NCBI GenBank assembly: GCA_977017575.1
Contig: CDRNVI010000184.1
Location: 114,796 to 178,795 of the forward strand
Direction: 5' to 3'
From: Paramoeba atlantica
Taxonomy: Eukaryota; Protista; Discosea
Length of the DNA stretch: 64,000 nt
The position numbers and the translations under genes were made by a program. The notes under the pieces were generated by a model. It made no database searches. It was not told the origin of the DNA and saw only the letters and a program-made list of their open reading frames with translations. Each line of letters opens with the position of its first letter. The first letter of the stretch is position 1. Of the stretch, positions 1 through 61,821 are shown piece after piece.

Positions 1-3000
1 CAATGTCTATTTGTATTATTTTCATTTTTAGAAAATTGTTATTCAGTTTTTGATGTTTAAAAGTTCATTTCCAAACAAGTTACAAATAAAATTGAATATT
101 TTACTCAATTTTACAATTTATTTGATTTATTTACAAAAAAAAAAATATATTTCCCTTTGTTTTTGATTATTTCCCAATCACTTTTTTCAATGTATAATTC
201 AATATTTGTATTATTTTCATTTTTTAGAAAATTGTTATTTAGTTTTTGATGTTTAAAAGTTCATTTCCAGACAAGTTACAAATAAAATTGTACTTTTTAC
301 ACAATTTTACAATTTATTTGATTTATTTACAAAAAAAAAAACATATTTCCCTTTGTTTTTGATTATTTTCCAACCACTTTTTTCAATGTTTATTTGTATT
401 ATTTTCTATTTTCATTTTTTCTCAATTGTTATTTAGTTTTTGATGTTTAAAAGTTCATTTCCAAACAAGTTACAAATAAAATTGTACTTTTTACACAATT
501 TTACAATTTATTTGACTTATTTACAAAAAAAAAAACATATTTCCCTTTGTTTTTGATCATTTCCCAACCACTTTTTTCAATGTCTATTTGTATTATTTTC
601 ATTTTTAGAAAATTGTTATTCAGTTTTTGATGTTTAAAAGTTCATTTCCAAACAAGTTACAAATAAAATTGAATATTTTACTCAATTTTACAATTTATTT
701 GATTTATTTACAAAAAAAAAAATATATTTCCCTTTGTTTTTGATTATTTCCCAATCACTTTTTTCAATGTATAATTCAATATTTGTATTATTTTCATTTT
801 TTAGAAAATTGTTATTTAGTTTTTGATGTTTAAAAGTTCATTTCCAGACAAGTTACAAATAAAATTGTACTTTTTACACAATTTTACAATTTATTTGATT
901 TATTTACAAAAAAAAAAACATATTTCCCTTTGTTTTTGATTATTTTCCAACCACTTTTTTCAATGTTTATTTGTATTATTTTCTATTTTCATTTTTTCTC
1001 AATTGTTATTTAGTTTTTGATGTTTAAAAGTTCATTTCCAAACAAGTTACAAATAAAATTGTACTTTTTACACAATTTTACAATTTATTTGACTTATTTA
1101 CAAAAAAAAAAACATATTTCCCTTTGTTTTTGATCATTTCCCAACCACTTTTTTCAATGTCTATTTGTATTATTTTCATTTTTAGAAAATTGTTATTCAG
1201 TTTTTGATGTTTAAAAGTTCATTTCCAAACAAGTTACAAATAAAATTGAATATTTTACTCAATTTTACAATTTATTTGATTTATTTACAAAAAAAAAAAT
1301 ATATTTCCCTTTGTTTTTGATTATTTCCCAATCACTTTTTTCAATGTATAATTCAATATTTGTATTATTTTCATTTTTTAGAAAATTGTTATTTAGTTTT
1401 TGATGTTTAAAAGTTCATTTCCAGACAAGTTACAAATAAAATTGTACTTTTTACACAATTTTACAATTTATTTGATTTATTTACAAAAAAAAAAACATAT
1501 TTCCCTTTGTTTTTGATTATTTTCCAACCACTTTTTTCAATGTTTATTTGTATTATTTTCTATTTTCATTTTTTCTCAATTGTTATTTAGTTTTTGATGT
1601 TTAAAAGTTCATTTCCAAACAAGTTACAAATAAAATTGTACTTTTTACACAATTTTACAATTTATTTGACTTATTTACAAAAAAAAAAACATATTTCCCT
1701 TTGTTTTTGATCATTTCCCAACCACTTTTTTCAATGTCTATTTGTATTATTTTCATTTTTAGAAAATTGTTATTCAGTTTTTGATGTTTAAAAGTTCATT
1801 TCCAAACAAGTTACAAATAAAATTGAATATTTTACTCAATTTTACAATTTATTTGATTTATTTACAAAAAAAAAAATATATTTCCCTTTGTTTTTGATTA
1901 TTTCCCAATCACTTTTTTCAATGTATAATTCAATATTTGTATTATTTTCATTTTTTAGAAAATTGTTATTTAGTTTTTGATGTTTAAAAGTTCATTTCCA
2001 GACAAGTTACAAATAAAATTGTACTTTTTACACAATTTTACAATTTATTTGATTTATTTACAAAAAAAAAAACATATTTCCCTTTGTTTTTGATTATTTT
2101 CCAACCACTTTTTTCAATGTTTATTTGTATTATTTTCTATTTTCATTTTTTCTCAATTGTTATTTAGTTTTTGATGTTTAAAAGTTCATTTCCAAACAAG
2201 TTACAAATAAAATTGTACTTTTTACACAATTTTACAATTTATTTGACTTATTTACAAAAAAAAAAACATATTTCCCTTTGTTTTTGATCATTTCCCAACC
2301 ACTTTTTTCAATGTCTATTTGTATTATTTTCATTTTTAGAAAATTGTTATTCAGTTTTTGATGTTTAAAAGTTCATTTCCAAACAAGTTACAAATAAAAT
2401 TGAATATTTTACTCAATTTTACAATTTATTTGATTTATTTACAAAAAAAAAAATATATTTCCCTTTGTTTTTGATTATTTCCCAATCACTTTTTTCAATG
2501 TATAATTCAATATTTGTATTATTTTCATTTTTTAGAAAATTGTTATTTAGTTTTTGATGTTTAAAAGTTCATTTCCAGACAAGTTACAAATAAAATTGTA
2601 CTTTTTACACAATTTTACAATTTATTTGATTTATTTACAAAAAAAAAAACATATTTCCCTTTGTTTTTGATTATTTTCCAACCACTTTTTTCAATGTTTA
2701 TTTGTATTATTTTCTATTTTCATTTTTTCTCAATTGTTATTTAGTTTTTGATGTTTAAAAGTTCATTTCCAAACAAGTTACAAATAAAATTGTACTTTTT
2801 ACACAATTTTACAATTTATTTGACTTATTTACAAAAAAAAAAACATATTTCCCTTTGTTTTTGATCATTTCCCAACCACTTTTTTCAATGTCTATTTGTA
2901 TTATTTTCATTTTTAGAAAATTGTTATTCAGTTTTTGATGTTTAAAAGTTCATTTCCAAACAAGTTACAAATAAAATTGAATATTTTACTCAATTTTACA

Positions 3001-4175
3001 ATTTATTTGATTTATTTACAAAAAAAAAAATATATTTCCCTTTGTTTTTGATTATTTCCCAATCACTTTTTTCAATGTATAATTCAATATTTGTATTATT
3101 TTCATTTTTTAGAAAATTGTTATTTAGTTTTTGATGTTTAAAAGTTCATTTCCAGACAAGTTACAAATAAAATTGTACTTTTTACACAATTTTACAATTT
3201 ATTTGATTTATTTACAAAAAAAAAAACATATTTCCCTTTGTTTTTGATTATTTTCCAACCACTTTTTTCAATGTTTATTTGTATTATTTTCTATTTTCAT
3301 TTTTTCTCAATTGTTATTTAGTTTTTGATGTTTAAAAGTTCATTTCCAAACAAGTTACAAATAAAATTGTACTTTTTACACAATTTTACAATTTATTTGA
3401 CTTATTTACAAAAAAAAAAACATATTTCCCTTTGTTTTTGATCATTTCCCAACCACTTTTTTCAATGTCTATTTGTATTATTTTCATTTTTAGAAAATTG
3501 TTATTCAGTTTTTGATGTTTAAAAGTTCATTTCCAAACAAGTTACAAATAAAATTGAATATTTTACTCAATTTTACAATTTATTTGATTTATTTACAAAA
3601 AAAAAAATATATTTCCCTTTGTTTTTGATTATTTCCCAATCACTTTTTTCAATGTATAATTCAATATTTGTATTATTTTCATTTTTTAGAAAATTGTTAT
3701 TTAGTTTTTGATGTTTAAAAGTTCATTTCCAGACAAGTTACAAATAAAATTGTACTTTTTACACAATTTTACAATTTATTTGATTTATTTACAAAAAAAA
3801 AAACATATTTCCCTTTGTTTTTGATTATTTTCCAACCACTTTTTTCAATGTTTATTTGTATTATTTTCTATTTTCATTTTTTCTCAATTGTTATTTAGTT
3901 TTTGATGTTTAAAAGTTCATTTCCAAACAAGTTACAAATAAAATTGTACTTTTTACACAATTTTACAATTTATTTGACTTATTTACAAAAAAAAAAACAT
4001 ATTTCCCTTTGTTTTTGATCATTTCCCAACCACTTTTTTCAATGTCTATTTGTATTATTTTCATTTTTAGAAAATTGTTATTCAGTTTTTGATGTTTAAA
4101 AGTTTATTTCCAAACAAGTTACAAATAAAATTGAATATTTTACTCAATTTTACAATTTATTTGACTTATTTATAA
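1..4175. repeat. Satellite array 1: 577-bp higher-order repeat made of three ~190-bp monomers (187+196+194), about 7.2 copies visible, open at the window start
   Basis: CAATGTCTATTTG recurs at 1, 578, 1155, 1732 ... 4040 (exact 577 spacing); monomer starts at 1, 188, 384. Confidence 0.97.
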
Positions 4176-4344
4176 AAAAAACTAAAAAACTAAAAAACTG
4201 AAAAACTGAAAAACTGAAAAACTGAAAAATTGGAAAATTGGAAAATTGGAAAATTGGAAAATTGGAAAATTAGAAAATTAGAAAATTGGAAAATTGGAAA
4301 ATTGGAAAATTGGAAAATTGGAAAATTGAAAAATTGAAAAATTA
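4176..4344 (+). repeat. 8-bp microsatellite (GGAAAATT and variants) terminating array 1
   Basis: Ordered run AAAAAACT > GAAAAACT > GGAAAATT > AGAAAATT > GAAAAATT. Confidence 0.95.
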
Positions 4345-4500
4345 AAAGAATTGAACTTGAGACTTCAAAAATGAAAAATTGAAGAAAAGAACAACTAAAC
4401 TATCATACTCATCTTTAAAAAAACAAAAAAATAAGAAAGTTAATGAGATTAATTTAAATTTTTTTTTATTTTTTCTCTTTTAACATCATTTCTTTTGTAT
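4345..4500 (+). repeat. Conserved satellite anchor, copy 1 (paralog at 42138-42300)
   Basis: AAAAGAATTGAACTTGA..CTTCAAAAATGAAAAATTGAAGAAAAG.ACAACTAAACTATCATACTCATCT is shared with 42138 onward. Confidence 0.9.
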
Positions 4501-4634
4501 TAATCTTTTATATTTCTTCTTCAAAATAAAATCTAAAACTAATATCTTTTTCACTACTTTTTAAATTAAAAACTTTTCAAAATATTATTTTATCATATAA
4601 AAGAGTTTTTTATTCAAACTTTAAATCTTAATTA

Positions 4635-4849
4635 AGTTTAAAAAAATATTCAAATATGAAATATTATAAATATATATAACATCTTTATTTAAATTCTTGT
4701 TGAATTCAATTCAATTGATTAAAGTTCATTATCATTAATATTCTTATTACTACATTTTCTTTTCTTCACTTTTCCACTTCTTGATTTTCCCAGTTTTCAA
4801 TTGTACTTCTTTAAACTATTGAAACCTTAGAAGTAAAATAAAATCTACC
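4635..4849 (+). repeat. 5' LTR, AT-eroded, start boundary blurred
   Basis: Colinear with 9863-10070; followed by TTGGT at 4850 (PBS-like). Confidence 0.75.
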
Positions 4850-7800
4850 TTGGTAATGCTTCAATTTGAATAACCAATAGAAGAAGCATTTGATCTTGAG
4901 AAATTGCTTAGAGGAAACTCCAAGCAGAACAATTGGTGAAGGCAATTCATTTCCTGGTTGTGCAAAATGAAGAGTTGGTGTGAATAAAGAAGGAGTTTTT
5001 AAAGATGAAAGAACCAAATTACAAATCTTAGAAACAACATTGGAAATTGGTAATTAAAGATGTGAATTTCCAAAACCCAGTCCAAGCTTCTCAATTTTGC
5101 ATCTAAAAAAAGAGTATTAAACAAGATATTTGACCAAACATACTTGAGTTCAGAAAACAAATCAAGTTTGCAAGGGCAATTGAAAGTCATTAGGCCAAAA
5201 GTTGGATGGATTACCTTTGAATTTGTTGTGTACCCTTAATAGATTCTTTGGTGAGAAAGTTGTCCTTATGGAACAGCAGAAGTTTGATCTTTTTTGAGTA
5301 CCTGATAAAAAAGTTACTAATCAAGAATTTCAGGTGGTAACTACAGAATATTTGCACCTGTTCTTGAAGATAAGAGAAACTCCCTTTCAGGAAATCTATG
5401 TGAAGGAAGCAATGTGAGAATTCAAAAATCCAATCTTCCAAGGTCTAAATAAAGTGTCTGTTAGGGGGGGAACAGATGAGTATTAAAGAACCAAAGAAAA
5501 ATTGAAGAGGAGTGAACCAATAACCTGTTTTCTTTCATCCCTGGATGAGCACTGTGGATAGATATGGTGATGCTGCAGCAAAGAAATATAAACATATGAG
5601 TCTTGTTAATTGGAACAAAAGAGTTCCAAGAAAGAGAGGATGTGGGGATTTCAGTTGGAAAATACTTTACTTGTGAACTCCTTGGATGTGGGATATTAAC
5701 TCTTGAAGAACTTAAAGAAAAAGCAAATGGTTTGTCAATTCTTTTAAAAGTAAAAAGGAATTTACTCAAAATACTTGGCAACAAGACAAGATGGTGGTCA
5801 AGATGAGTGAAAATGGCTTCACAATCCATATTGGCAACCTAGTAAGAGACTTGAATCCTAAAATATACCAAATAAATAATAAACTGTTCAACATACCTTG
5901 CATGGTCAATGATATTTACTACACAAGCACTTTGTGATTCTAGGGCTTGCAGGATAGATGTTGTGGCAAGAACATTCCTGAATAAAGCAATTCCCAAACT
6001 TTAGAGACCATTACAAAGGAAATTACATTTCCTTAGCTGACAAATCATCAATAATGCCAACTGAAGAAGTTCACTCCTTCCCAATCCCAGAGAGATTGGA
6101 GAATTAAAAATAACTACACAAACAAGATTGGATCCTAGATCAATTTTAGCAGTTGAGGTCAAACAGAAAAAAAAAGCTCTACAACTGAGATTTGATTATG
6201 TGAGACAATATATCTACACTACTTGAATTGAGATTATGAATGTTGGAAATACCTCATTCTCACTTGAAAAAGGGTCTACATGTTGTAAAACACATTAATG
6301 TTACAGAAAAGAATGCAGAACAAACCATTGCAAAACCTCTTGATAAAAGACCAGTAAAACTTCACCAAAAGAAGTCAGATGAAAGAATGTATAAAGATAA
6401 ATTGGTCACTCCAGAACTACAGCCTCAAGAGGACTGCCATGGAATGGCAAAACACATGTGCAATCAAGGAGGTTGGGGATTCTCAGAAGAAATAGCATCA
6501 ATGTTCTTTAGCAAATATCCTGTTGAGAGATGGTCAGAAAAATCTGGAAGAAGATGAAAAGATGATTCCAGAGGAATATGAGGAGTTCACAAAGAAAACT
6601 GACCTCACTCTTAGTGATCTCAATCTTGATCAAATGATTCAACTCTGTAAACTCTTTGAAAAATACAAAGAAATGTGGGACATACTTAGCAATGCTCCAA
6701 TCATGCATACAGATGCAACAGAGTTCAAAATTGAACTTAAAGATGAAACTCAAAAGCCTTTTAGATGAGCTTATTATACAAAGGAGACAGTCAAAAGGAC
6801 AATTGAAGAGAATCAAATCCAAGAAATGGCCAAGAGAAGAGTCATCCAATCATCAAATTCACCATGTTAGTGGCAAAAAAGCAAATGAAAAAGTCTGATT
6901 CTGTATGGATTACAGAGAATTAAATGAAAGGACTAAGAAATGGAGTTATCTAATACCAAAAAAATTAATGATGTGTTGTCATACCTGGGTGAATCTTCAT
7001 TCTTTTCAACATTGGATATGACTGCAGCATTTTAGTCAATCCCAATCCAAGAGGAAGACAAGGGAAAAATGGCTTTTGTTCACAATTCAGGCTGTGGGAA
7101 TGGAATTCAATGCCATTTGGATTAACAAATGCTCTGGCAACACAGCAACATTTTATAGATACAATACTTGCTGGCTTGCAATGATATATATCTGTATTAA
7201 TTATGTTGATGACATAGTTATCTTCTCAAAAACCTTTGAGAAACATATTCAATCACTAGTAGAGAAAGTGCTGGATAGATTAAAGGAAAATAAGTTGCAA
7301 ATTAACCTGAGTAAAGTGGTGAAAGATCTTTCACATTACTTGGATATACAGCAACAAAGGATGGAATTTTGGCTAATGACAAGAAAGTCAAGGCCATAAA
7401 ACATTTTCCACAACCAACCAATCAAAAGGAATTACAATCACTCTTAGGATTGGTTAGTTGGTGTAGGAGATTCATCCACAATTGTTCTCAAAAAACATAT
7501 CACCTTCGAGAATTATTGCTACAACCATTATTTGAATGGGTTAAGAAGGCAGATAATGAATTTCAGGAAATGAAGGAAACAATTGCAAGAATACCAATGC
7601 CAAATTTCAGAAAAACATTCTATATTCATGTGGACACATCAAAAAATGGTTATGATTCAATACTGATACAACACCCTGATGATCCTCTTGATAAACCAGC
7701 ACCAAAAAGGTCAGAAATACCAAAAAAGCACAAAATAGTCGCTTTCACAAGTCTGGCTTTGCCAAAACACAATAAAAATATACAAATTCTGAACAAAAAT

Positions 7801-9852
7801 GTTATGAGGCTTACTGGGCAATTAACAAGTTTAAGGAATTCATTATGGGAAGAGATGTGGTGATTTTTAGTGAGCACCAGAGTCAACAGTCAAACTGTGC
7901 AACTCCACAGTAAGCAAACAAGAAGCAAACTTATCTGTGGGTGGCTGCTGGAAATAGCAGCAGTTGCAAGTCAAATTCTACACCAACCTGGGAAAACACT
8001 GGTTATTCCTGATACACTCAGTTGAGCACATCATGTATCCTATCAAGAGGAAGATGCTCAAACTCCAATTAAGAAATCCTGGAGAGACTGGGAGTTAAAA
8101 ATGTGGAAAACAAAACAACATTTTAACAAACAAAAAATGGCAATATTGAAGCTCTGTTCTCTCTCAAAAACCTGTCATAGGGTAGATGAGTCCACCAGAG
8201 ATGGAAAGGAGTTATTGGCTAAAATGGGTCAGTGCACAGAAAGCATGGGTCAGCTTGGTGGCCAATCTGCTCAAGGAAGGAGCAGGGGACTCTCTCAAGG
8301 ATGACTATCTGGGATAGCTGTTGGGTCAGCTTCATGTAAGACACTGGGCAGTGTGATGGGTTAGCTTCAGACAATTCCCAGCAAGACTGAGTGTAATGAC
8401 ATTTCTGACTCTGGAAGTGAGGATGAATTTAGGTCAAGTACACAACCAGGTGAACCTACCAGAGTTCATACAGTGCCTGAAATACAACCTCTTATAAATA
8501 AGGAGCCAGAAGGAGCAAAACTGTCAGATACTGGTGCTGGCCACACTGGATCTGAGAATCAGAATGATTCAGAAAAACAATGGATCATAAAGGACCAAGA
8601 ACAATACTGGAGCAATATGAAGGATCAATTTTGTCAAAGAATGAGAAATTTGATCTTAATTAGAGAATACCTGAGTTTTGTAAAGACATTCAGAAATTAT
8701 TGGAAACAAGGTGACATTATTGTCTCAATAATACATATACCCATATCTTATCAATTGTGGATGCCTTCACAGGGTACTTTTCATTATTTCCACTGAAAGC
8801 TGTCATCACAAAAGAGATGGCACAATGCCTCTTGAAATATGTTACAATCCATTCAATGCCACCGGAAATAGTGACTGATGGAGGGGCCCAGAAAGAACTC
8901 TTTGTGGAATTGACACAAATCTGAGGAACACACCATGCAAAGGTCTCCCTCTATAACCACAAAGGAAATGGCAAAGTGGAAACAATTCATTCACCTGTTA
9001 AAAACATGATGAGGGCTTTATGTCCAGAAATATCAAAGGGACTGTGGGATTTGCTCCTTCCAATTGGTGGAATTTGCTTACAATACCCAAGTTCATTCTG
9101 TAACAAAACAAAAACCTTTCATGTTACAATTTAGTCGAATACCAACATATCCAATCAATGTTACACTGGGAACATCAAACCCAAAATTGGTTACTTCAGA
9201 TGAATATGTGGCTAATGTGAGGAATAAGATGTTAGAAATCTTTCAACTGGTAAATGAAAAATGAAGAGATTCCAAGGAACAAAGAGTTGATGACTATAAT
9301 GCTCATCAAAGAACTCAAATTCTATCGGTTGGAGACTGAGTCCTTCTTCTAAATCATGAAAAAAGGAAGAAATTTAACCAAAAATTCAATCCAAGGACAC
9401 AAGGTGATGTCCATATGATAACTGAGGTTGTTTCAGCTCAAATATATCGATTAAGGAATCTCAAAACAAGATGGATTCTTCCACAACCTGTTCATGGAAG
9501 TGAATTAATATGAAAGGGTTGAGATTGAAAAGGAACAAAACCTGATAAAGGAGAAAGAACTCCCACCAGGAGATGGATGAAGAAGTCTGAGATATAGAAT
9601 TATCTCAGAAAGAGAATTTGATGGTTATCAACAATATTGTATGGAAATCCAACCACCTACTGGAAGAAAATGACATAAGTGGTGGGAGAAAGAACACCTG
9701 GGAGGTACAAAAGAGTTGAAAGATTACCTCAAGGCAAAGAAGCCTCAAAAAGGTTATTGGTGGGCAGACTGATCAATAATGGGTGGATTTTCCCTGTAAG
9801 AACTTTGAATTTTGTTCAGAACTGACAAAGCTGCGCTCAAAACTCTGCTTGC

Positions 9853-10070
9853 AAGGGGGGGGTGTAAATAATTAAATATCCAAATATGAAATATTATAAA
9901 TATATATAACACCTTTATTTGAATCCTTGTTAAATTCAGTTCAACTGATTGCAGTTCATTGTTGTCAACATCCTGTCACTGTGTTTTCTCCTCTCTACTC
10001 TCTCACTTGTTGATTTCCCAGTTTCTCAACTGTGCTTCTTTGAAACCTCAGAAATAAAACAAAATCTACA
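9853..10070 (+). repeat. Polypurine tract (9853-9862) and 3' LTR (9863-10070, TG...CA)
   Basis: AAGGGGGGGG then TGTAAATA; ends AAAATCTACA, where homology to the 5' LTR stops. Confidence 0.85.
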
Positions 10071-10830
10071 AAGGATTGCTTCATCCAAGAAAGCTTCACA
10101 ACAAAAAAAAAACAAGATGTCACATAAAAACAAAAAGAAAAAAGGAAATGGAAATGGATATATAAAAATAAAAAATAATATCGACAAAAGAGTGAGCCAG
10201 GCTGAGAAAAAAATAATCATAACAACAATAAATAACAACAATAATAAAATAACAAAATAACAACAACAATATTCCAAACAAAGTACACTATTGGGGAGAA
10301 TCAAACAAAACAACAACAGCAACATTCACAACAGACTCTTTGCCAACAAACACTTTCAGGGTGAAATCATTCCAAACAGTTTTAAATAATATATGTGACA
10401 CAACCAAAAAACCTAGAATAAAGAAAGAAACAACAATCCATAAAAATAACCCAAACAGTAATTCTCTCTCAAAGATAAGTTGAGGATCCAAACTTTTAAA
10501 CAACTCTCCCAACAACATCTCAACCAACCAACAAAAGAAAACCAAATAATAATAAAAGCAAACATAACAAAAAAAACCTTTTTTGAAGAAAAAAAAAAAT
10601 AGGTCACACAAGTTCCAACAAACACAAGCAAGAAAAAACAGTCCAAAAAACTCACATCAGTAATTATTCAATCCCTCACCTCACTCTTGTTCCCTTTTGG
10701 AGGGGGATATCTTTTTTTTTGAATTTCATTCAAGAAAACAAAAAAAACTTAACTCTCAGATTCTCCATCAACCCTCTGGCTCTCTGGTAACAAAAAAGAG
10801 AAGTAATCCATCAAAGAAAAGAAGAAATAA
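10071..10830 (-). repeat. Segmental duplicate, inverted copy of ~31600-32455
   Basis: For example, 10071 AAGGATTGCTTCATCCAAGAAAGCTTCACAAC matches the reverse complement of 32425-32455; 10350-10450 matches 32040-32170. Confidence 0.85.
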
Positions 10831-11274
10831 GAAAAAGAAAGCACAAAAAAACAGGAAAAGGAAAAAGAAAAAAAGAAAAAAAGAAAGAAAACAAAAAAAG
10901 AAAGAAAAAAAAAGAAAGAAAAAAAAGAAAGAAAAAGAAAGAAAAAAAAGAAAGAAAAAGAAACCACAACTTGAAGCAACATATTTAACCCAATCATGAT
11001 CATAGTGACCTATGAAAGAAGAGAAAAAAAGAGAAAAGAAAAAAGAGAAAGGAAAAGAAACAAAAAGAGAGAAAAAAAAGGGAAGAAAAAAAAGGGAGAA
11101 AAGAAGGGAGAAAAAAAGAGAAGTAAGGAAAAAAGAAAAGAGATGATGGCAAGAACAAAAACAGAAAACTAGAGTGGGGAAGGTGCAACACTCTTTTTTT
11201 AGCCACAAAAAAAAGATTTTGGGGTTTCACAATTTTTTTTACCCTTTGTTTTTTTTGTTTTTTTTGTTTCCTTT

Positions 11275-11350
11275 CAATCCTTTTTGCATCTCCCAAGTCT
11301 TGGTCATGTTTCACAAAGACACTATCACACTCATCATCAAGACAAAAAAA
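11275..11350 (-). pseudogene. Short fragment of the PB1-like gene
   Basis: Reverse complement reads GATGATGAGTGTGATAGTGTCTTTGTGAAACATGACCAAGACTTGGGAGATGC, homologous to 30062-30110. Confidence 0.75.
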
Positions 11351-11593
11351 AACACTCAAACAGAAGGGATTGAAGAAAATTGGAACAAAAAGATGAAGAA
11401 AAATGAAAAAATTCAATATGTGGGAATTGAACCCGTCAGGTAAATAGATGGTTCTTGCCCTTCTCCTTACTCTCCTAGGTTCGAAAAAGAAGTCTTTCAA
11501 TCCTCCTCCAAAGAAGAGAAGACAAAAATAGAAGACATTATTTGAAAAATAACAAACCAAAGTCACCAGGGTTACCAAAATGAACCTAGGATT

Positions 11594-11643: not shown

Positions 11644-12759
11644 TTTTCTTCCTTGAGGTCATTTGAGCATTGCTTGGATCACCACTGATAGAGAAAGAAC
11701 CAAAATAACACTTCTTCATCCATTCAAGAATGAAAGTTCTTTTTATGGTTATCCAATAAGTTGATTGTTTCAACAAAAAAAAAGATCAAAAGAGATGAGT
11801 TCTCTGGTCAAAAAAAATGAGAAAAAGGAGGCAAAAAGAAAAGATCAGAAGAGTAAGATAAAGGAAATAGGGGAAATAAAATGGAAACAAACAAAAAAAA
11901 ATCTAATGATAAAGAAAAAAGAAAAAAGAACCCTAGTAAGCTGATAGTCTCACAGCTTAACCATTTCAGTCAGGTCCCATTTCTCTCAAAGCTCTTCTTT
12001 CTCAAAAGACAAAGGAATGCCAAATCAAAGGTTCCCAACATTGAACTGGGGTGAGTCATAAAATAATTGAAGAAATAATTGAAATTCTCAAGGGTCCACC
12101 AGGTTTAATCCTCTTATAACATCAAAGAGAAAAGGGTTGTTTGAACAAATCAAAAGAACTTTTTAACTTGTTTATAACACTCTTTACAATCTTTTCAATT
12201 TGTTTTGCCTTTCTTGATCTTGAATGTTAATCACAAATAAATTATTAAAAGCCAAGTACAAAGTGGAGACATTATACAAAGAGGAAAGCAATTATCCCTT
12301 TTAAAAGAAAAGAAAAGAAAAAAAGTTAGTTTTTTTGATTAAAAAAAACAAAAAACAAAAAAAAACATCATCATCACAACAAAACACCAAAACCCCTCCC
12401 TCCACCACAGGTATTCAACAAAACCAAATAACCATAACCCAAATATCCACCCAAGAAACAACCACCTATAAACAACTGCCAACAAATAACAAATAACAAA
12501 CAACAAAACAACAAACAACAATTCCCCCCCCACAAACAATGCACAATACTCCAGGAACAACAAAACACAAAATAAAGAAGCTCCCTTCATTCAAAAGGAA
12601 AGTCAATGAATTTTAAAAAAAACAAAGGGGAAAAAAAGGAGGGAAGGAAGGAAGAGGAAAAAGAGAAAGGAGGAAAAGAGGGGGGAAAACAAAAGAGATA
12701 AAAAAGAAAAAGGGAAAGTAAAAAAGGGAGAAAAAGGAGAAAGATAAGAAAGAAACAAG

Positions 12760-18029: not shown

Positions 18030-18779
18030 TTAGTTCTCACTAAGGGGTCTGCGTTTGATTGTTCGCCTTCTAAAACCAGGGAGTGAATTCGGTTTGGAGG
18101 TTTCTATGAAGTTAATTACATTCCTTCGAAAATCTTCCTCGATAAAGCTCCTCACCAGATTGCTCTCTTGGGACTGATGGAACCATCCTTGGATATCTTT
18201 AGTAATTATTACAGGGAGAATTAGAGCATTCTCAAGAGCAGTTTGGGCCGGAAACAAAACATGGGGGGTTGTCACCATGTTTCCTTGGAATTTCCTTACA
18301 AAATTCCCTGGAGGGATGGGGAAAGTCCAGTCACGGGTGAGGGGGGAATTGATCCAGTTCCATAGGGTTGAATTCAAAATAATCCACTCTTCACTGGTTT
18401 CTGCAACATGTTGTGATCTTGGATCCCAATGATGGTCATTCACAGCACATGTTCCATCCTCTTTAGACCAACTTGCAGCAGTTGCAATTGCATCAGCTCG
18501 CTTGTTAAGATCTCGGGGTACATGGATGAATTCTATCTTGTCAAAGCACATTGCTAACTTACAGATTTCACAAAGTAGTTCATTCAAGGCATAGTTTTTG
18601 ATGGCATGGGTTTTGGGTGCAGCCTTGGTGAGAATCATACAATCCCCGACAACTTCAATCTCATTTGTCATTGATCTGGCACATTGCATTCCTTTCAGAC
18701 AGCCTGTAAATTCACCAATATTGTTGGACCCAAGAGGGATGTCTTTTTTGGATGTTCCAAATTTTTGGATCCAGCGTCT
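18030..18779 (-). pseudogene. 5'-truncated RNase HI-like (RVT_3-type) open frame, retroelement-derived or host
   Basis: LGSNNIGEFTGCLKG...VVGDCMIL...IEFIHVPRDLNKRADAIA matches the TNNxAEY / GDS / HVPRxxNxxAD motifs; the first catalytic Asp segment is absent. Confidence 0.7.
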
Positions 18780-31569: not shown

Positions 31570-32731
31570 ATAAAAAGATCAATTCAAGGGGTGATGGGTG
31601 GTGGGTTACTTCTCTCCTTTTGTACCAGAGAACCAGAGGGTTAATTCAGAAAATCCAAGAGTTAGATTTTTCCTTTGGTTCCTCACTTTCTTTCCTTTTT
31701 CTCTTTTCTAGATCACTTATAATATATTACAAGGAGTTTTGCCACTGTTTTTTACATTCTTGAATGAAATTCAAAAAAAAAAGACACTCCCTTCCTTCAG
31801 TGAGAGATTGAATTGTGAGTTTTTTGGACTGTTTTTCTTGCTTATGTTTGTTGGGAGGTATGTGACATATTCTTTTTTCTTAAAAAGGTTTTGTTTTCGT
31901 TATTTTTTTTTTATGTTTGGTTTTTATTTGTGTTTTGTATTGTTTTTTATTTTTTTATTTTTTCTTTTGTTGGTTGGTTGGGATGAGTTTGTTGTTTGTT
32001 TGTTAGGAGAATTAATTAAAAACTGAGAGAATTCTGGGTTGTTTTTATGGATTGTTGTTTTTTTCTTTATTATAGGTTTTTTTGGTTGTTGGTTGTTTGG
32101 TTTGGTGTGTAAAGAACATATTATTTAAAACTGTTTAGAACGATTTCACTCCTGAAGTGTTTGTTGGAAAAGAGTTTGTTTGGAGTATTGCTGTGGTGCT
32201 GTTGTTTTGTTTGATTCTTGTGTCTATTAATTATTGTAGTTATTGTTGGGGATGTTATTATTGTAGTTGTTGTTATTGATTATTGGTTATTATTCTTGTT
32301 ATTTATTGTTGTCATGATTATATCAGTTGGTCTGCTCTTAGAGATATTATTTTTTATTTTTGTTTCCATTTTCTTTTTCTTTTTTTCTTTTTCTTTTTTT
32401 ATGTGGTGTCTTGTTTTTTTTTTGTTGTGAAACTTTCTTAAATGAAGCAGGCCTTTTTTTATGCCTGGAAAGCATTGTTAGACTCAACCAAGCTTCAGAG
32501 TTCAAATGAAAAGGTCTCTTGCATGAAAACAACATCTCAAGGGAAAAAAATGAGAGGAATTGGTGCAATTGTTAAATTGTTGGAAATTGAGAAATACCTT
32601 TAATCATTTGGTTGTGTTGAGCTTGGGGCAAGAAAATTCCTTATTATCAAAGGGTGGTAAAGAACCAGGAAAGGGGGCTAACATAAGACTTATTGGGTTC
32701 TTTGGGAGAAAGTTTCTTGGCTTTGTCCTTC

Positions 32732-35489: not shown

Positions 35490-38400
35490 ATTTTTTCATT
35501 TTTGATTATTTTCCAATCACTTTTTTCAATGTATAAATCAATATTTGTATTATTTTCATTTTTTCTCAATTGTTATTTAGTTTTTGATGTTTAAAATTTA
35601 GTTACCAGACAAGTTACAAATAAAATTGTACTTTTTACATAATTTTACAATCTATTTGACTTATTTACAAAAAAAAAAATATATTTCCCTTTGTTTTTGA
35701 TTATTTCCCAACCACTTTTTCAATGTCTATTTGTATTATTTTCATTTTTAGAAAATTGTTATTCAATTTTTGATGTTTAAAAGTTCATTTCCAGACAAGT
35801 TACAAATAAAATTGTATTTTTTACATAATTTTACAATCTATTTGATTTATTTACAAAAAAAAAAACATATTTCCCTTTGTTTTTGATTATTTTCCAATCA
35901 CTTTTTTCAATGTATAAATCAATATTTGTATTATTTTCATTTTTTCTCAATTGTTATTTAGTTTTTGATGTTTAAAATTTAGTTACCAGACAAGTTACAA
36001 ATAAAATTGTACTTTTTACATAATTTTACAATCTATTTGACTTATTTACAAAAAAAAAAATATATTTCCCTTTGTTTTTGATTATTTCCCAACCACTTTT
36101 TCAATGTCTATTTGTATTATTTTCATTTTTAGAAAATTGTTATTCAATTTTTGATGTTTAAAAGTTCATTTCCAGACAAGTTACAAATAAAATTGTATTT
36201 TTTACATAATTTTACAATCTATTTGATTTATTTACAAAAAAAAAAACATATTTCCCTTTGTTTTTGATTATTTTCCAATCACTTTTTTCAATGTATAAAT
36301 CAATATTTGTATTATTTTCATTTTTTCTCAATTGTTATTTAGTTTTTGATGTTTAAAATTTAGTTACCAGACAAGTTACAAATAAAATTGTACTTTTTAC
36401 ATAATTTTACAATCTATTTGACTTATTTACAAAAAAAAAAATATATTTCCCTTTGTTTTTGATTATTTCCCAACCACTTTTTCAATGTCTATTTGTATTA
36501 TTTTCATTTTTAGAAAATTGTTATTCAATTTTTGATGTTTAAAAGTTCATTTCCAGACAAGTTACAAATAAAATTGTATTTTTTACATAATTTTACAATC
36601 TATTTGATTTATTTACAAAAAAAAAAACATATTTCCCTTTGTTTTTGATTATTTTCCAATCACTTTTTTCAATGTATAAATCAATATTTGTATTATTTTC
36701 ATTTTTTCTCAATTGTTATTTAGTTTTTGATGTTTAAAATTTAGTTACCAGACAAGTTACAAATAAAATTGTACTTTTTACATAATTTTACAATCTATTT
36801 GACTTATTTACAAAAAAAAAAATATATTTCCCTTTGTTTTTGATTATTTCCCAACCACTTTTTCAATGTCTATTTGTATTATTTTCATTTTTAGAAAATT
36901 GTTATTCAATTTTTGATGTTTAAAAGTTCATTTCCAGACAAGTTACAAATAAAATTGTATTTTTTACATAATTTTACAATCTATTTGATTTATTTACAAA
37001 AAAAAAAACATATTTCCCTTTGTTTTTGATTATTTTCCAATCACTTTTTTCAATGTATAAATCAATATTTGTATTATTTTCATTTTTTCTCAATTGTTAT
37101 TTAGTTTTTGATGTTTAAAATTTAGTTACCAGACAAGTTACAAATAAAATTGTACTTTTTACATAATTTTACAATCTATTTGACTTATTTACAAAAAAAA
37201 AAATATATTTCCCTTTGTTTTTGATTATTTCCCAACCACTTTTTCAATGTCTATTTGTATTATTTTCATTTTTAGAAAATTGTTATTCAATTTTTGATGT
37301 TTAAAAGTTCATTTCCAGACAAGTTACAAATAAAATTGTATTTTTTACATAATTTTACAATCTATTTGATTTATTTACAAAAAAAAAAACATATTTCCCT
37401 TTGTTTTTGATTATTTTCCAATCACTTTTTTCAATGTATAAATCAATATTTGTATTATTTTCATTTTTTCTCAATTGTTATTTAGTTTTTGATGTTTAAA
37501 ATTTAGTTACCAGACAAGTTACAAATAAAATTGTACTTTTTACATAATTTTACAATCTATTTGACTTATTTACAAAAAAAAAAATATATTTCCCTTTGTT
37601 TTTGATTATTTCCCAACCACTTTTTCAATGTCTATTTGTATTATTTTCATTTTTAGAAAATTGTTATTCAATTTTTGATGTTTAAAAGTTCATTTCCAGA
37701 CAAGTTACAAATAAAATTGTATTTTTTACATAATTTTACAATCTATTTGATTTATTTACAAAAAAAAAAACATATTTCCCTTTGTTTTTGATTATTTTCC
37801 AATCACTTTTTTCAATGTATAAATCAATATTTGTATTATTTTCATTTTTTCTCAATTGTTATTTAGTTTTTGATGTTTAAAATTTAGTTACCAGACAAGT
37901 TACAAATAAAATTGTACTTTTTACATAATTTTACAATCTATTTGACTTATTTACAAAAAAAAAAATATATTTCCCTTTGTTTTTGATTATTTCCCAACCA
38001 CTTTTTCAATGTCTATTTGTATTATTTTCATTTTTAGAAAATTGTTATTCAATTTTTGATGTTTAAAAGTTCATTTCCAGACAAGTTACAAATAAAATTG
38101 TATTTTTTACATAATTTTACAATCTATTTGATTTATTTACAAAAAAAAAAACATATTTCCCTTTGTTTTTGATTATTTTCCAATCACTTTTTTCAATGTA
38201 TAAATCAATATTTGTATTATTTTCATTTTTTCTCAATTGTTATTTAGTTTTTGATGTTTAAAATTTAGTTACCAGACAAGTTACAAATAAAATTGTACTT
38301 TTTACATAATTTTACAATCTATTTGACTTATTTACAAAAAAAAAAATATATTTCCCTTTGTTTTTGATTATTTCCCAACCACTTTTTCAATGTCTATTTG

Positions 38401-41400
38401 TATTATTTTCATTTTTAGAAAATTGTTATTCAATTTTTGATGTTTAAAAGTTCATTTCCAGACAAGTTACAAATAAAATTGTATTTTTTACATAATTTTA
38501 CAATCTATTTGATTTATTTACAAAAAAAAAAACATATTTCCCTTTGTTTTTGATTATTTTCCAATCACTTTTTTCAATGTATAAATCAATATTTGTATTA
38601 TTTTCATTTTTTCTCAATTGTTATTTAGTTTTTGATGTTTAAAATTTAGTTACCAGACAAGTTACAAATAAAATTGTACTTTTTACATAATTTTACAATC
38701 TATTTGACTTATTTACAAAAAAAAAAATATATTTCCCTTTGTTTTTGATTATTTCCCAACCACTTTTTCAATGTCTATTTGTATTATTTTCATTTTTAGA
38801 AAATTGTTATTCAATTTTTGATGTTTAAAAGTTCATTTCCAGACAAGTTACAAATAAAATTGTATTTTTTACATAATTTTACAATCTATTTGATTTATTT
38901 ACAAAAAAAAAAACATATTTCCCTTTGTTTTTGATTATTTTCCAATCACTTTTTTCAATGTATAAATCAATATTTGTATTATTTTCATTTTTTCTCAATT
39001 GTTATTTAGTTTTTGATGTTTAAAATTTAGTTACCAGACAAGTTACAAATAAAATTGTACTTTTTACATAATTTTACAATCTATTTGACTTATTTACAAA
39101 AAAAAAAATATATTTCCCTTTGTTTTTGATTATTTCCCAACCACTTTTTCAATGTCTATTTGTATTATTTTCATTTTTAGAAAATTGTTATTCAATTTTT
39201 GATGTTTAAAAGTTCATTTCCAGACAAGTTACAAATAAAATTGTATTTTTTACATAATTTTACAATCTATTTGATTTATTTACAAAAAAAAAAACATATT
39301 TCCCTTTGTTTTTGATTATTTTCCAATCACTTTTTTCAATGTATAAATCAATATTTGTATTATTTTCATTTTTTCTCAATTGTTATTTAGTTTTTGATGT
39401 TTAAAATTTAGTTACCAGACAAGTTACAAATAAAATTGTACTTTTTACATAATTTTACAATCTATTTGACTTATTTACAAAAAAAAAAATATATTTCCCT
39501 TTGTTTTTGATTATTTCCCAACCACTTTTTCAATGTCTATTTGTATTATTTTCATTTTTAGAAAATTGTTATTCAATTTTTGATGTTTAAAAGTTCATTT
39601 CCAGACAAGTTACAAATAAAATTGTATTTTTTACATAATTTTACAATCTATTTGATTTATTTACAAAAAAAAAAACATATTTCCCTTTGTTTTTGATTAT
39701 TTTCCAATCACTTTTTTCAATGTATAAATCAATATTTGTATTATTTTCATTTTTTCTCAATTGTTATTTAGTTTTTGATGTTTAAAATTTAGTTACCAGA
39801 CAAGTTACAAATAAAATTGTACTTTTTACATAATTTTACAATCTATTTGACTTATTTACAAAAAAAAAAATATATTTCCCTTTGTTTTTGATTATTTCCC
39901 AACCACTTTTTCAATGTCTATTTGTATTATTTTCATTTTTAGAAAATTGTTATTCAATTTTTGATGTTTAAAAGTTCATTTCCAGACAAGTTACAAATAA
40001 AATTGTATTTTTTACATAATTTTACAATCTATTTGATTTATTTACAAAAAAAAAAACATATTTCCCTTTGTTTTTGATTATTTTCCAATCACTTTTTTCA
40101 ATGTATAAATCAATATTTGTATTATTTTCATTTTTTCTCAATTGTTATTTAGTTTTTGATGTTTAAAATTTAGTTACCAGACAAGTTACAAATAAAATTG
40201 TACTTTTTACATAATTTTACAATCTATTTGACTTATTTACAAAAAAAAAAATATATTTCCCTTTGTTTTTGATTATTTCCCAACCACTTTTTCAATGTCT
40301 ATTTGTATTATTTTCATTTTTAGAAAATTGTTATTCAATTTTTGATGTTTAAAAGTTCATTTCCAGACAAGTTACAAATAAAATTGTATTTTTTACATAA
40401 TTTTACAATCTATTTGATTTATTTACAAAAAAAAAAACATATTTCCCTTTGTTTTTGATTATTTTCCAATCACTTTTTTCAATGTATAAATCAATATTTA
40501 TATTATTTTCATTTTTTCTCAATTGTTATTTAGTTTTTGATGTTTAAAATTTAGTTACCAGACAAGTTACAAATAAAATTGTACTTTTTACATAATTTTA
40601 CAATCTATTTGACTTATTTACAAAAAAAAAAATATATTTCCCTTTGTTTTTGATTATTTCCCAACCACTTTTTCAATGTCTATTTGTATTATTTTCATTT
40701 TTAGAAAATTGTTATTCAATTTTTGATGTTTAAAAGTTCATTTCCAGACAAGTTACAAATAAAATTGTATTTTTTACATAATTTTACAATCTATTTGATT
40801 TATTTACAAAAAAAAAAACATATTTCCCTTTGTTTTTGATTATTTTCCAATCACTTTTTTCAATGTATAAATCAATATTTGTATTATTTTCATTTTTTCT
40901 CAATTGTTATTTAGTTTTTGATGTTTAAAATTTAGTTACCAGACAAGTTACAAATAAAATTGTACTTTTTACATAATTTTACAATCTATTTGACTTATTT
41001 ACAAAAAAAAAAATATATTTCCCTTTGTTTTTGATTATTTCCCAACCACTTTTTCAATGTCTATTTGTATTATTTTCATTTTTAGAAAATTGTTATTCAA
41101 TTTTTGATGTTTAAAAGTTCATTTCCAGACAAGTTACAAATAAAATTGTATTTTTTACATAATTTTACAATCTATTTGATTTATTTACAAAAAAAAAAAC
41201 ATATTTCCCTTTGTTTTTGATTATTTTCCAATCACTTTTTTCAATGTATAAATCAATATTTGTATTATTTTCATTTTTTCTCAATTGTTATTTAGTTTTT
41301 GATGTTTAAAATTTAGTTACCAGACAAGTTACAAATAAAATTGTACTTTTTACATAATTTTACAATCTATTTGACTTATTTACAAAAAAAAAAATATATT

Positions 41401-41955
41401 TCCCTTTGTTTTTGATTATTTCCCAACCACTTTTTCAATGTCTATTTGTATTATTTTCATTTTTAGAAAATTGTTATTCAATTTTTGATGTTTAAAAGTT
41501 CATTTCCAGACAAGTTACAAATAAAATTGTATTTTTTACATAATTTTACAATCTATTTGATTTATTTACAAAAAAAAAAACATATTTCCCTTTGTTTTTG
41601 ATTATTTTCCAATCACTTTTTTCAATGTATAAATCAATATTTATATTATTTTCATTTTTTCTCAATTGTTATTTAGTTTTTGATGTTTAAAATTTAGTTA
41701 CCAGACAAGTTACAAATAAAATTGTACTTTTTACATAATTTTACAATCTATTTGACTTATTTACAAAAAAAAAAATATATTTCCCTTTGTTTTTGATTAT
41801 TTCCCAACCACTTTTTCAATGTCTATTTGTATTATTTTCATTTTTAGAAAATTGTTATTCAATTTTTGATGTTTAAAAGTTCATTTCCAGACAAGTTACA
41901 AATAAAATTGTATTTTTTACATAATTTTACAATCTATTAAATCTATTTACAAAAA
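35490..41955. repeat. Satellite array 2: 381-bp higher-order dimer (194+187), about 17 copies, same family and orientation as array 1
   Basis: CAATGTATAAATC at 35527, 35908, 36289 ...; CAATGTCTAT at 35721. Confidence 0.97.
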
Positions 41956-41959
41956 AAAA

Positions 41960-42137: not shown

Positions 42138-42300
42138 AAAAGAATTGAACTTGAAACCTCAAAAATGAAAAATTGAAGAAAAGGACAACTAAACTATCAT
42201 ACTCATCTCTAAAAAAACAAAAAAACAAGCTAGTTAATGGAATCAGTTTAATTTTTTATTTTTCTTTTTTACAATTATTTCTTTTGTATTAATTTTTTAG
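42138..42300 (+). repeat. Conserved satellite anchor, copy 2
   Basis: Homologous to 4345-4500. Confidence 0.9.
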
Positions 42301-42829
42301 AGTTTTTTTCAAAGAAAACAATAAATCATTGCAAATATTAAATTTTTAAAGAATTTGTAATATTATTGATAAGGTGAGGGAGTTTCAAAAAGAAAAAAAT
42401 AAAAATAAGAAGAAAAAGATTGTTAAATATAGTTCTTTTTTTTAAATATTCATCCCAATCAAGATTCATTTCTCTCAAAGCTTTTCTTTTTCAGAATAAA
42501 GAAATATCAATTAAAAATTTCCAACATTGGAGTCACTAGAGAGTTAATTGTTGTAGAAGTGTCAAGAAGATTTTCTATCCATTGTATAAAGAAGAAAAGC
42601 ATTAAGAGGGATGGGTTTGAGAGTAATTTTAGTGGTAAAGTAGAAAGTTGAAATAGAATCAGTGAGGAAAAGAAAAATGTAAAGAAAATGAAAAGGAAGA
42701 AAAAGTTTCTTAAGATCTCATACAAAGAGCACAAAGGAATTGAGCAACTCAATGTATTTCAAGAACCAACTTTAGAGGAAAGAAAAATCTTTGATAGAAC
42801 ACAACAAAAGGTTTTTTTTTAATTGCAAT

Positions 42830-46150: not shown

Positions 46151-47873
46151 TTTTGAACCAAAAAAAAAATCAGGTTTACCTCAAAGGAAAAAGGAAAAAA
46201 GAAAGAATAAAGAAAGAATAAAGAAAGAATAAAGAAAAAAAGGAAAAGACAGAAGAAAAAGAAAAAGTAAAGAAAAGAAAAAAAGAAAAAGAAGATAACA
46301 TTTTGATTCCAGTTTTATCTTTTTGCTCCTTTGTTTTTCTCTTTGCTCTGCAATCTCCATCATCTTCCCTGATCATTTGCCCAAAAATGAGATTCTTTTA
46401 CAAACATCTCACAATCTCAAAAACTTTGGATGTTGCAAAACAAAACACCCCAATAAATTACTAACACTTAACCCTGAACAATATAGCAAGATCACCTGTG
46501 TTATAAGATGAACTTGAGTGTGAGAAGAGAGATGAGAAAAAAAAAAATAGAACAAAAAAAAAAGAAAAGAGGATATCAACAACAACAAAAAAAAACAGAC
46601 TAAAAAAACACAATCAACTAAAAATAAAAATAAAAATAAAAAAAAGTTAACAAACCATATGAAAAAGTGATCAAAGTGGTTCTCTTTGGATACTTAGCCA
46701 GACAGCCCTACAATATAACTCTTTAACTCTCTTAGACTTGGCTATAGAGACCCAAGAAACACGTCAAACAAGAATTCCAACTCTTTTTTTTCTCTTAGAT
46801 CTGATAAAGAAATCGCCTCAACATTTTGAGATGTGCAAAAATAGATTGGTTGTAGTGGTCAATTCATGGAATGTAAAACCTGAAGAGAAAAGAATATTGG
46901 TATTAGAATTCTTTTAAAAGATAGAAAAAAAATAAGAAAAGAAAAAAAGTAAAGAAAAAAAAGGAGAAAGGGAGAAAGGAGAGACAAAGGAAAAATGAAG
47001 AATTCAAAAATCCCAAACACCAAAGTCAAAGAAAAAAAAGAGAAAAAAAGAAGAAAGAGAGAAAGAAAGAAAAAAACAAAGTGAAAAAGAGAAGAAAAAG
47101 ATTAAAAAAAAGGAGGGAAACTAAAAGGAGAAAAACCAACCAATCCCCAACCCCAATCCCAAAAGCTGAAAACAACAAACATCACATCACATCACACACC
47201 ACACTCACAAAATATAACCACATGACAAAACATGACAAACAAAAAGATTTAAAAAAGAAAAGAAAAGAAAAAAATAACCTTTTGTCTTTTTGGTGTGGAT
47301 AACCCAATTGCCCCCCACGCCATTCCCAATTCGCTCAATTTCAAACCCCTCTTGCCTCTCTCTCGAAAAAGGAAAAAAGAAACAAGTTGGTTGTTTTCTT
47401 TTTTTTCTCTCTTTTTTTTCTTTGATCACTCTTTTTTGAAAATCTGTTTTCTTTTTTTCTTTTAACTTCAAGGTCGGTGTTCTTTCTTCCTTTTCTCCCT
47501 CTTGCCTCTCTTGTTTTGTATCAGGGAACAAGAAGGGAAAACAAAAAAAAAACAAAAAAAAAAATTAGCGCACTTTTAGCAAACTAAATCTGTGTTGTCG
47601 AAAGAAAAGGTTTGAAAAAACAAAGCAGCAAGAAGAGACAATGTGAAAAAGGATCTCTTTTATTAAAAATTAAAGTAAATAATTTTCATGGAATTCAAAA
47701 AAGAAGAAGAGGAAAGAGAAGAGAGGAGTCATTTTTTTGTCTCCTCTTTCATAAATCAACTTTTGAAACAGACACACCCCTCCTCCACTCCCTCCACCCA
47801 AGAAAGGAGAGAGGAGAGAGAGGAAGAGAGAGAGAGAGAGAGAGGGAAGGGGGAATCTCCTCATTTCTGTTTT

Positions 47874-50260: not shown

Positions 50261-50594
50261 AATAATAATTCTATGCCTTCAAAACTCTTTTTTGCTTTTT
50301 TTGTGGAACATCTTTTGGGGGGAAATGATCAAGAAAAGAGGGAACCAAAAATAACAAAACACACCCTCCTTATTTTGAATATTTTCTCTCGAATATTTGT
50401 GTGGAGGCACACCACAATCTGCAAATAGAATAACAAGAAAAAGACTGAACCAGAATCAAATTTGTGTTTTCCTCGGACCTGTTTTTCAACAAAAAGAAAA
50501 TTAAAAAAAAAGGGAAAGAAAAAAAGAAAAAGAAAAAAAAAAAAAAGAAAAAAAGGGAAAGAAAAAGAAAGAAAAAGAAAAAGAGAAAAAGAGA

Positions 50595-50714
50595 AGGTCT
50601 TCAGCACTCGGGATTCGAATGTGGTCACCCACCATTCTACTAACCGAGCCCACAGCTGCTTAACTTCCGAGTTCTGATGGGATCGGGTGCTTTCAACTGG
50701 GTATGACCGAAGAC
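50595..50714 (-). rRNA. rrn5: 5S ribosomal RNA gene
   Basis: GTCTTCGGTCATACC...CCGATCCCATCAGAACTCGGAAGTTAAGC...GGTTAGTA...GGGTGACC...GTGCTGAAGACCT, 120 nt, followed by a T-rich terminator. Confidence 0.97.
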
Positions 50715-61748: not shown

Positions 61749-61821
61749 AGCACCAGGAGGGACTCGAACCCACAACCACCAGCTCAGAAGGCCGATGCGC
61801 TACCAATTGCGCCACTAGTGC
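61749..61821 (-). tRNA. trnR: tRNA-Arg(UCU), with atypical features
   Basis: GCACTAG-TG-GCGC AATTGGTA GCGC-A-TCGGC CTTCTGA GCTGG-TGGTT-GTGGG TTCGAGT CCCTC-CTGGTGC, followed by an oligo-T terminator. Confidence 0.85.

Follow-up and report, generated by a model that had tools for sequence, protein, structure and literature searches.

Structure of the region beside the satellite arrays

The window (the whole stretch of 64,000 nucleotides of Paramoeba atlantica DNA that was analysed) contains two satellite arrays. Array 1 (1-4176, plus strand) consists of ~190-bp monomers with a G+C content of 19.8% and without any CpG. It is built of ~7 identical 577-bp units of three monomers each, and these units carry no private variants. 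Its right end is formed by an 8-bp microsatellite, AAAATTGG and variants of it (4177-4360, plus strand), which is followed by flank A (4361-4579, plus strand; 219 bp, 17% G+C), the fixed right anchor of the satellite cassette. Array 2 (35499-41959, plus strand) comprises 17 copies of a 381-bp two-monomer unit that are 99% alike. To the right of array 2 lies flank A' (42156-42325, plus strand), a paralog of positions 4362-4537 with 83-86% identity. Expansion, contraction and homogenisation were evident in both arrays, and array length differed greatly among copies of the duplicated block described below. Both arrays look recently expanded or homogenised. We found no LTR pair adjoining array 2, and neither of the flanks of array 2 had relatives among the loci compared.

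The interval 4574-4849 consists of the left piece of an old repeat (R1-left; 4580-4641, plus strand) and the 5' LTR of a degenerate Ty3/gypsy element (4642-4849, plus strand; the start is uncertain by ~5 bp); it forms the edge of a dead Ty3/gypsy insertion that faces the satellite. The internal part of the element (4850-9862, plus strand) contains many stop codons and matches RVT_1 and the RNase H profiles RT_RNaseH and RT_RNaseH_2. A polypurine tract (9854-9862, plus strand) stands directly before the 3' LTR (9863-10070, plus strand; 31% G+C), which has TGT...ACA ends, lies in direct orientation with the 5' LTR and is the less eroded partner of the two. The far half of the old repeat begins at the end of the 3' LTR (R1-right; 10070-10460, plus strand). 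On the minus strand, an uninterrupted paralog (R2; 32030-32547) has both pieces of the old repeat joined directly; it is an 'empty site' that contains no gypsy element and polarises the changes in R1. A target-site duplication was not recognisable when positions 4634-4650 were compared with 32478-32500, and the left junction lacks ~22 bp of the old repeat together with the initial bases of the 5' LTR.

Elsewhere in the window, an intact 219-codon frame with an RNase H-like motif, of a type known from retroelement-derived genes, is located at 18030-18689 (minus strand). Rfam matches were restricted to 5S rRNA and one tRNA. Two 5S rRNA genes (50596-50714 and 62353-62471, minus strand) lie inside duplicated flanks (50543-50741 and 62303-62498) that differ by 9 transitions and 0 transversions, and a tRNA-Arg (TCT) gene is found at 61749-61821 (minus strand). 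Beside the latter, a polyubiquitin frame (62758-63480, minus strand) comprises three units, which are 16-24 transitions and 5-7 transversions apart; the last unit terminates in ...LVLRL, without the usual RGG.

The interval 4574-4849 occurs at least nine times in the 45.7-Mb assembly, on seven contigs and with 96-100% identity. In every copy the 3' LTR is 5.2 kb off, and the entire 5-kb interior of the element was duplicated along with the interval, as was the uninterrupted paralog, which lies 27-72 kb further on. The repeated block is at least 30 kb long. We counted the copies as seven lineages, which are mutually 96-99% alike.

Contig C184 carries two copies of the block in inverted orientation (47457-47753, minus strand, and 119369-119665, plus strand), as does contig C167 (91145, minus strand, and 150738, plus strand). 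These inverted pairs are 99.9% identical, lie 60-72 kb apart and are either large palindromes or fold-back artefacts of the assembly. Further, the tubulin genes of this genome, which are intronless, were found in near-identical pairs, suggesting that two haplotypes are present. On contigs C141 (L003, 1-845) and C144 (L006, reverse strand, 1-511), a CpG-free transposon-like sequence truncates the array and leaves remnants of 1.35 and 3.4 monomers, respectively. We considered these short arrays as a natural experiment and abandoned the idea: the transposon merely cuts the arrays, and private events were too few (in the near zone, 0 for C141 and 0 for C184a).

One-directional loss of G and C in repeats

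A sequence-only reading of the window had noted by eye that 16 of 19 substitutions between R1-left and its paralog were directional and that the 5' LTR differed from the 3' LTR in the same manner. Both observations were confirmed. When 4574-4641 was aligned with the reverse complement of 32478-32547 (66 aligned bases, 19 substitutions), 16 transitions had A or T in the satellite-side copy, one was in the reverse direction and two substitutions were of other kinds (binomial p=2.7e-4). R1-left has lost 16 of 24 G and C relative to R2, and the losses occurred on both strands (G, 11 of 14; C, 5 of 10). Between the 5' LTR (4639-4849) and the 3' LTR (9869-10069), we counted 35 substitutions, namely 25 transitions with A or T in the 5' LTR, 6 in the reverse direction and 4 transversions (binomial p=8.8e-4); again, both strands were affected (G, 9 of 19; C, 16 of 41). 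The 20-mer that the reading had quoted was found in the 3' LTR, at 9935-9954. In the edge 4574-4849 as a whole, 40-67% of G and C are gone through C:G>T:A transitions. The reading had also described a piece next to array 2 as AT-shifted relative to 11976-12045, and this piece (42460-42540, plus strand) indeed differs from its G+C-richer paralog (11970-12050, plus strand) by 20 substitutions, 14 of which are transitions to A or T on the array side, with 2 in the reverse direction (binomial p=4.2e-3).

The far half of the old repeat served as an internal control. R1-right (10070-10460), which today is 5.7 kb from array 1, differs from R2 (32030-32456) by 57 substitutions, and its transitions are symmetric (15:16, p=1). 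The asymmetry differs between the near and the far half (Fisher's test, p=0.0015). The two halves were adjacent before the insertion of the gypsy element and the near half alone is eroded, indicating that most of the erosion postdates the insertion. Further, the AT-shifted 5' LTR is common to all block copies; thus, the erosion of the 5' LTR predates the duplications and is an inherited state rather than a peculiarity of this locus.

The eroded bases are not assembly (consensus) errors. The variable sites 4452, 4497, 4598, 4742, 4839 and 4855 reappear in contigs of four public runs, which counters the objection that the bases were misassembled; these runs belong to one study and possibly include the assembled sample, and they are therefore only partly independent. 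The contigs of the public runs differ from the window by A>G and T>C at 32-52 places per run and by C>T and G>A at 6-17.

We then aligned the seven lineages over window positions 3364-11359 and polarised the changes by majority, the satellite being excluded from the counts. The 3' LTR and the element on contig C193 were tried as outgroups and rejected as noisy; the outgroups also decay, and the majority rule over the seven lineages was adopted for this reason. Among 163 polarised changes that arose after duplication, 136 were G/C>A/T transitions and none were G/C>A/T transversions; the remainder comprised 18 A/T>G/C transitions and 9 other changes. Close to the array, several calls of A/T>G/C come from 4:3 or 5:2 splits, and there the paralog identifies G/C as the ancestral state. 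The bases from -3 to +3 had no effect on the polarised changes except for G at +1 (rate 0.375 compared with 0.04-0.07; 16 cytosines in the alignment are still within CpG). The rates at CpA, CpC and CpT were 0.042, 0.068 and 0.057, respectively. The statement of the sequence-only reading that many of the changes fall outside CpG thus agrees with the polarised data, in which context plays no part other than at CpG.

Decay of this kind was also seen in elements that no satellite adjoins. Contigs C193 and C194 harbor related elements, 96.6% alike, which are separate insertions without an adjoining satellite. These two elements differ by 201 transitions and 9 transversions. There were 77 transitions at CpG, corresponding to 0.77 per CpG cytosine compared with 0.03-0.065 elsewhere, and CpG was ~15 times hotter than other sites. 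Within the LTR pairs of C193 and C194, nearly all differences are transitions, and these are roughly balanced or oppositely skewed. The transition-to-transversion ratio of the decay is ~17-22. In contrast, the ratio is 1.1-2.6 in short or older repeats in the window, where misalignment of low-complexity sequence inflates transversions in some pairs, and ~3.3 in the polyubiquitin repeats. The extreme transition bias is therefore a property of long, young repeats. We concluded that one-way, transition-only decay occurs genome-wide in long repeats.

Dependence of the decay on distance from the arrays

Plotting the polarised rate against distance from the arrays, a check suggested together with the sequence-only reading, revealed that the rate falls with distance in both time slices distinguished below and in a left flank, a result at the level of the locus. 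Distances were measured from position 4360. The rates of C>T change per G/C site were 0.195 and 0.18 at 0-0.5 kb, 0.085 and 0.083 at 0.5-1.5 kb, 0.052 and 0.055 at 1.5-3.5 kb, 0.02 and 0.039 at 3.5-5.7 kb, and 0.055 at 5.7-7 kb. The logistic slope was -0.89 per log10 distance, which was reached in 0 of 2000 permutations, and -0.98 when the first 503 bp were omitted (1 of 2000 permutations). The first 0.5 kb, which contains only 17 post-duplication events, differed from the remainder (Fisher's test, p=5e-6). Up to 0.5 kb from the array, decay was thus ~4 times as fast as at a distance of a few kb, before duplication as well as after it, and the array side forms the steep end of the genome-wide decay. 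This ~4-fold ratio matches the older 25:6 ratio of the LTR pair; the one gradient was therefore active in two distinct time slices.

On the left side of the array, the independent flank present in C141 and C144, in which the transposon lies beside the array remnant, showed 12 differences between these two copies, all of which were transitions. Their rates per G/C site were 0.16 at 0-100 bp, 0.08 at 100-250 bp and 0.03 at 250-511 bp (p=0.02-0.04). The gradient is described here for one ancestral locus (seven lineages), one left flank (two copies) and one short case beside array 2.

We also compared the element in the window with its relative on C193. The counts of transitions with A or T in the window and in the reverse direction were, in successive segments up to ~7800, 43:16 (5' LTR), 60:28, 55:37, 39:21, 49:37 and 55:30, and past 7800 they were 46:53, 53:48, 45:43 and 24:22 (3' LTR). 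In the well-aligned part, the ratio was 143:88 (p=4e-4) against 168:166. The A/T excess over the C193 relative therefore fades from the 5' end of the element, and none is left by ~7800. The control elements on C193 and C194 have no such 5'-to-3' trend, and the gradient is thus not a property of the gypsy element. Further, at each of the three array flanks in the window, G+C content increases away from the array. CpG is absent within ~8-10 kb of both arrays, and the observed/expected ratio is 0.2-0.6 further out. The gradient is the new part of these results, as a position- and composition-dependent form of repeat-associated C>T decay.

Candidate causes of the gradient and comparison with known systems

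The sequence-only reading had compared the erosion with leakage of fungal RIP, and had offered dense non-CpG methylation as another source. We therefore analyzed dinucleotide composition and candidate genes. Values on the RIP side are above 0.89 for TpA/ApT and below 1.03 for (CpA+TpG)/(ApC+GpT); the observed values of 0.5-0.8 and 1.2-1.7, respectively, are both on the non-RIP side. TpA was depleted and no preference for CpA was seen. The near-exclusive C:G>T:A change in repeats that characterises RIP was nevertheless found (136 of the 163 polarised changes, and 201 transitions compared with 9 transversions between C193 and C194). The CpG observed/expected ratio was 0.25 for the whole window and 0-0.07 within ~8-10 kb of the arrays, and the ratios of TpG and CpA near the arrays were 1.1-1.8. 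Thus, CpG depletion, an excess of TpG and CpA, and hypermutable CpG, all of which are expected from deamination of 5mC, were present together.

In contrast, a DNA cytosine-5 methyltransferase, which 5mC deamination also calls for, was not detected. Profile searches of the 45.7-Mb assembly with PF00145 and TIGR00675 returned no candidate, including none of the RID/DIM-2 type; tubulin genes were recovered from the same assembly as full open frames, and absence from an assembly is not equal to proof. Dense non-CpG methylation, as it had been proposed, therefore lacks a detectable enzyme and is not supported. A profile search of the genome for APOBEC_N (PF08210) gave no match. The genome contains three CDA-fold genes and two genes of TET/JBP-type dioxygenases, the latter as two near-identical copies each (C3:218187-218660, C30:803409-803882, C39:574702-575160 and C40:275206-275664). 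The open frames of the TET/JBP genes, with 893 and ~1044-1048 codons, are comparable in size with kinetoplastid JBP1 and JBP2. Profiles of chitin synthase 1, radial spoke and paraflagellar rod proteins had no match in the genome. AID/APOBEC editing is marked by strand-specific G>A changes, TC, CC or WRC motifs, confinement to the element and a corresponding gene, none of which was observed. We thus discarded APOBEC-type editing of cDNA: both strands are changed, a motif is lacking, flanks outside the element are the worst affected and no APOBEC_N match was obtained.

To what does the rate respond? Local G+C content (50 bp on each side) predicted it better than distance did (log-likelihood -485.3 compared with -489.2), and when these two were fitted jointly, both were significant (distance, p=0.011). 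Regional G+C (250-2000 bp on each side) absorbed the distance effect (distance, p=0.08-0.45). Given distance, G+C was still significant (p=0.0002-0.006 for windows of 50-2000 bp; 0.001-0.006 at 250-2000 bp), and at sites more than 1.5 kb off, the rate decreased from 0.077 to 0.026 with rising local G+C. Because surrounding G+C absorbs the effect of distance, the array seems to act as an 80% AT block rather than through a specific agent that it releases. The earlier proposal that the process spreads from the arrays therefore holds in part: there is a gradient with distance, but decay occurs throughout the genome, and the distance term is absorbed by surrounding G+C. The further proposal, that this process had made the satellite AT-rich, found no support; monomer types do not differ by transitions alone, and the array units are free of private mutations.

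We give about an even chance to a melting model, in which deamination is faster in easily opened AT-rich DNA and the gradient is seeded by the 80% AT satellite. In the human genome, deamination requires strand separation, such that G+C within 1.5-2 kb modulates CpG decay, and CpG is ~15 times hotter than other sites (PMC2265638). Under the melting model, cytosine or a modified cytosine in silent repeats would be deaminated, either by hydrolysis or by an enzyme. The ease of duplex opening would limit the rate of this decay, and cytosines in AT-rich surroundings would go faster. The 80% AT satellite cassette would represent a permanent soft spot; as the flank turned AT-rich, the next cytosines would be lost sooner, and this self-reinforcing erosion front would creep outward over 1-3 kb. 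The arrays would accordingly seed the gradient by their composition and would emit no specific agent.

Several points weigh against the melting model. The present G+C content is the product of past erosion and could be no more than a marker of some lasting regional cause, for instance chromatin; a stable domain of chromatin that the array nucleates would yield the same correlation between G+C and rate. Distance was significant beside 50-bp local G+C, and all seven lineages describe one ancestral locus. Further, melting alone explains neither the near-absence of transversions nor the ordinary ratios (1.1-3.3) of the short, older and ubiquitin repeats, and a factor linked to repeats or to silencing must therefore exist.

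We consider a second explanation possible on present evidence but on balance doubtful: a silent chromatin state, or a cytosine modification, may nucleate on the cassette, spread over a few kb and recruit a methylating or deaminating enzyme. Functionally, this would correspond to the DIM-5/HP1/DIM-2 branch of RIP in Neurospora, where the linker adjoining repeats, among them a 4-copy tandem array, is the target of mutation mediated by DIM-2 (10.1101/115501). The anchoring of the gradient at the cassette on both sides fits this explanation, as does the fact that R1-left, at ~60 bp too short and too diverged for recognition as a repeat, is nevertheless the most eroded piece. CpG is missing within ~8-10 kb of both arrays and is only partly depleted beyond, its ~15-fold hotter rate is like that of 5mC, and two TET/JBP-type dioxygenase genes are present. 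However, neither of the two profile searches found a C5-methyltransferase, even though all tubulin genes were full-frame in the same assembly, there was no APOBEC_N match, and distance has no further effect in models that include regional G+C. A related and, in our judgement, unlikely possibility is an enzyme-driven repeat defence, guided by chromatin or homology, that would deaminate any cytosine, nucleate on the satellite and spread over a few kb as an independent analogue of RIP.

The remaining explanations are weaker. Stalling or break repair at the array borders could expose the flank as single-stranded DNA for instance by resection over kilobases, and in single strands cytosine deaminates much faster. 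The kb scale of the gradient, its anchoring at the array and the evident expansion, contraction and homogenisation of the arrays are in line with this idea. Resection, however, predicts strand-coordinated changes in the right flank, where both strands are changed about equally, and the decay is also present in elements away from arrays; we thus regard exposure of single strands as quite improbable. It is very improbable that there is no rate gradient and that the pattern results from deeper coalescence on the array side (through less gene conversion or an older duplication), a chimeric LTR pair or assembly errors. A/T>G/C calls are also commoner near the array and some site patterns misfit a single tree, as expected in that case, but most of these calls are the mis-polarised 4:3 or 5:2 splits. 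Moreover, the LTR pair and the comparison of R1 with R2 show their asymmetries within one copy, independently of coalescence among copies, deeper coalescence would not give one-directional changes, and the variable sites recur in four public runs.

Canonical fungal-type RIP, a premeiotic, RID-dependent and duplication-sensing process that would spill from the array into the flank, is almost certainly not the cause. Long, young repeats do show C:G>T:A transitions only, and mutation of neighbouring genes with a fall-off of ~1 kb is said to occur beside RIP-affected repeats in Leptosphaeria. Both dinucleotide indices, together with TpA depletion and the lack of a CpA preference, nevertheless contradict RIP, and a RID/DIM-2 homologue was not found in the profile searches; with these two defining features contradicted, we rejected canonical RIP, and with it the RIP-like leakage that had been proposed for this locus. 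Further, array units are perfectly identical and carry no private mutations, and the organism does not look fungal, given the absent chitin synthase 1 match and the genes of JBP1/JBP2 size. RIP-like signatures have been reported to be restricted to ascomycetes (PMC12543289).

Fungal RIP and methylated genomes provide well-known examples of one-way C>T decay in repeats; here it occurs in a protist in which neither class of enzyme was found, and the locus is of interest mainly because the enzymes responsible for this decay elsewhere seem to be missing from the organism. Our results add a spatial rule, according to which the rate rises ~4-fold beside an AT-rich satellite and tracks surrounding G+C. 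This provides a testable account of how AT-rich heterochromatic islands may grow outward. In addition, old LTR pairs near arrays will give misleading insertion ages, and both LTR-divergence dating and the clustering of repeat families in this genome must allow for decay that is position-dependent and one-directional.

In Leptosphaeria maculans, RIP reportedly leaks into genes beside AT-rich repeat blocks and builds AT-rich compartments. Similarly, one-way C>T decay in Paramoeba spills from repeat blocks to their neighbours; unlike in L. maculans, this locus has negative RIP indices, and its CpG/TpG/CpA pattern resembles methyl-CpG decay. LTR retrotransposons of vertebrates undergo APOBEC editing, which leaves clustered C>T or G>A changes (PMC4866542). 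The Paramoeba locus resembles these cases in that an LTR element has accumulated C>T and G>A changes. It differs in that both strands are changed, TC and CC motifs are not involved and sequence outside the element is hardest hit; further, the changes continue once the element has integrated, and the search for APOBEC_N gave no gene. In Neurospora, single-copy DNA adjoining repeats is the main target of mutation by the DIM-5/HP1/DIM-2 branch (10.1101/115501). In both systems, the changes are exclusively C>T and G>A, and non-repeat sequence that adjoins repeats or tandem arrays is mutated. Unlike in Neurospora, there is no CpA bias, no homologue of DIM-2 or RID was found and the organism is not a fungus.

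The closest parallel to the composition dependence comes from mammalian genomes, in which Fryxell and Moon (in 2005) reportedly found that deamination of methyl-CpG depends on surrounding G+C. The same dependence was documented by Elango et al. (2008; PMC2265638). In contrast to mammals, no DNA methyltransferase gene was detectable here, non-CpG cytosines hold nearly all current changes, transversions are almost absent and the effect is seen in long repeats rather than in ordinary sequence. The composition effect spans ~1.5-2 kb in mammals, and the Paramoeba gradient fades by ~3.5 kb. As in mammalian methyl-CpG decay, however, C>T loss is faster in AT-rich surroundings, and the excess at CpG is ~15-fold in both.
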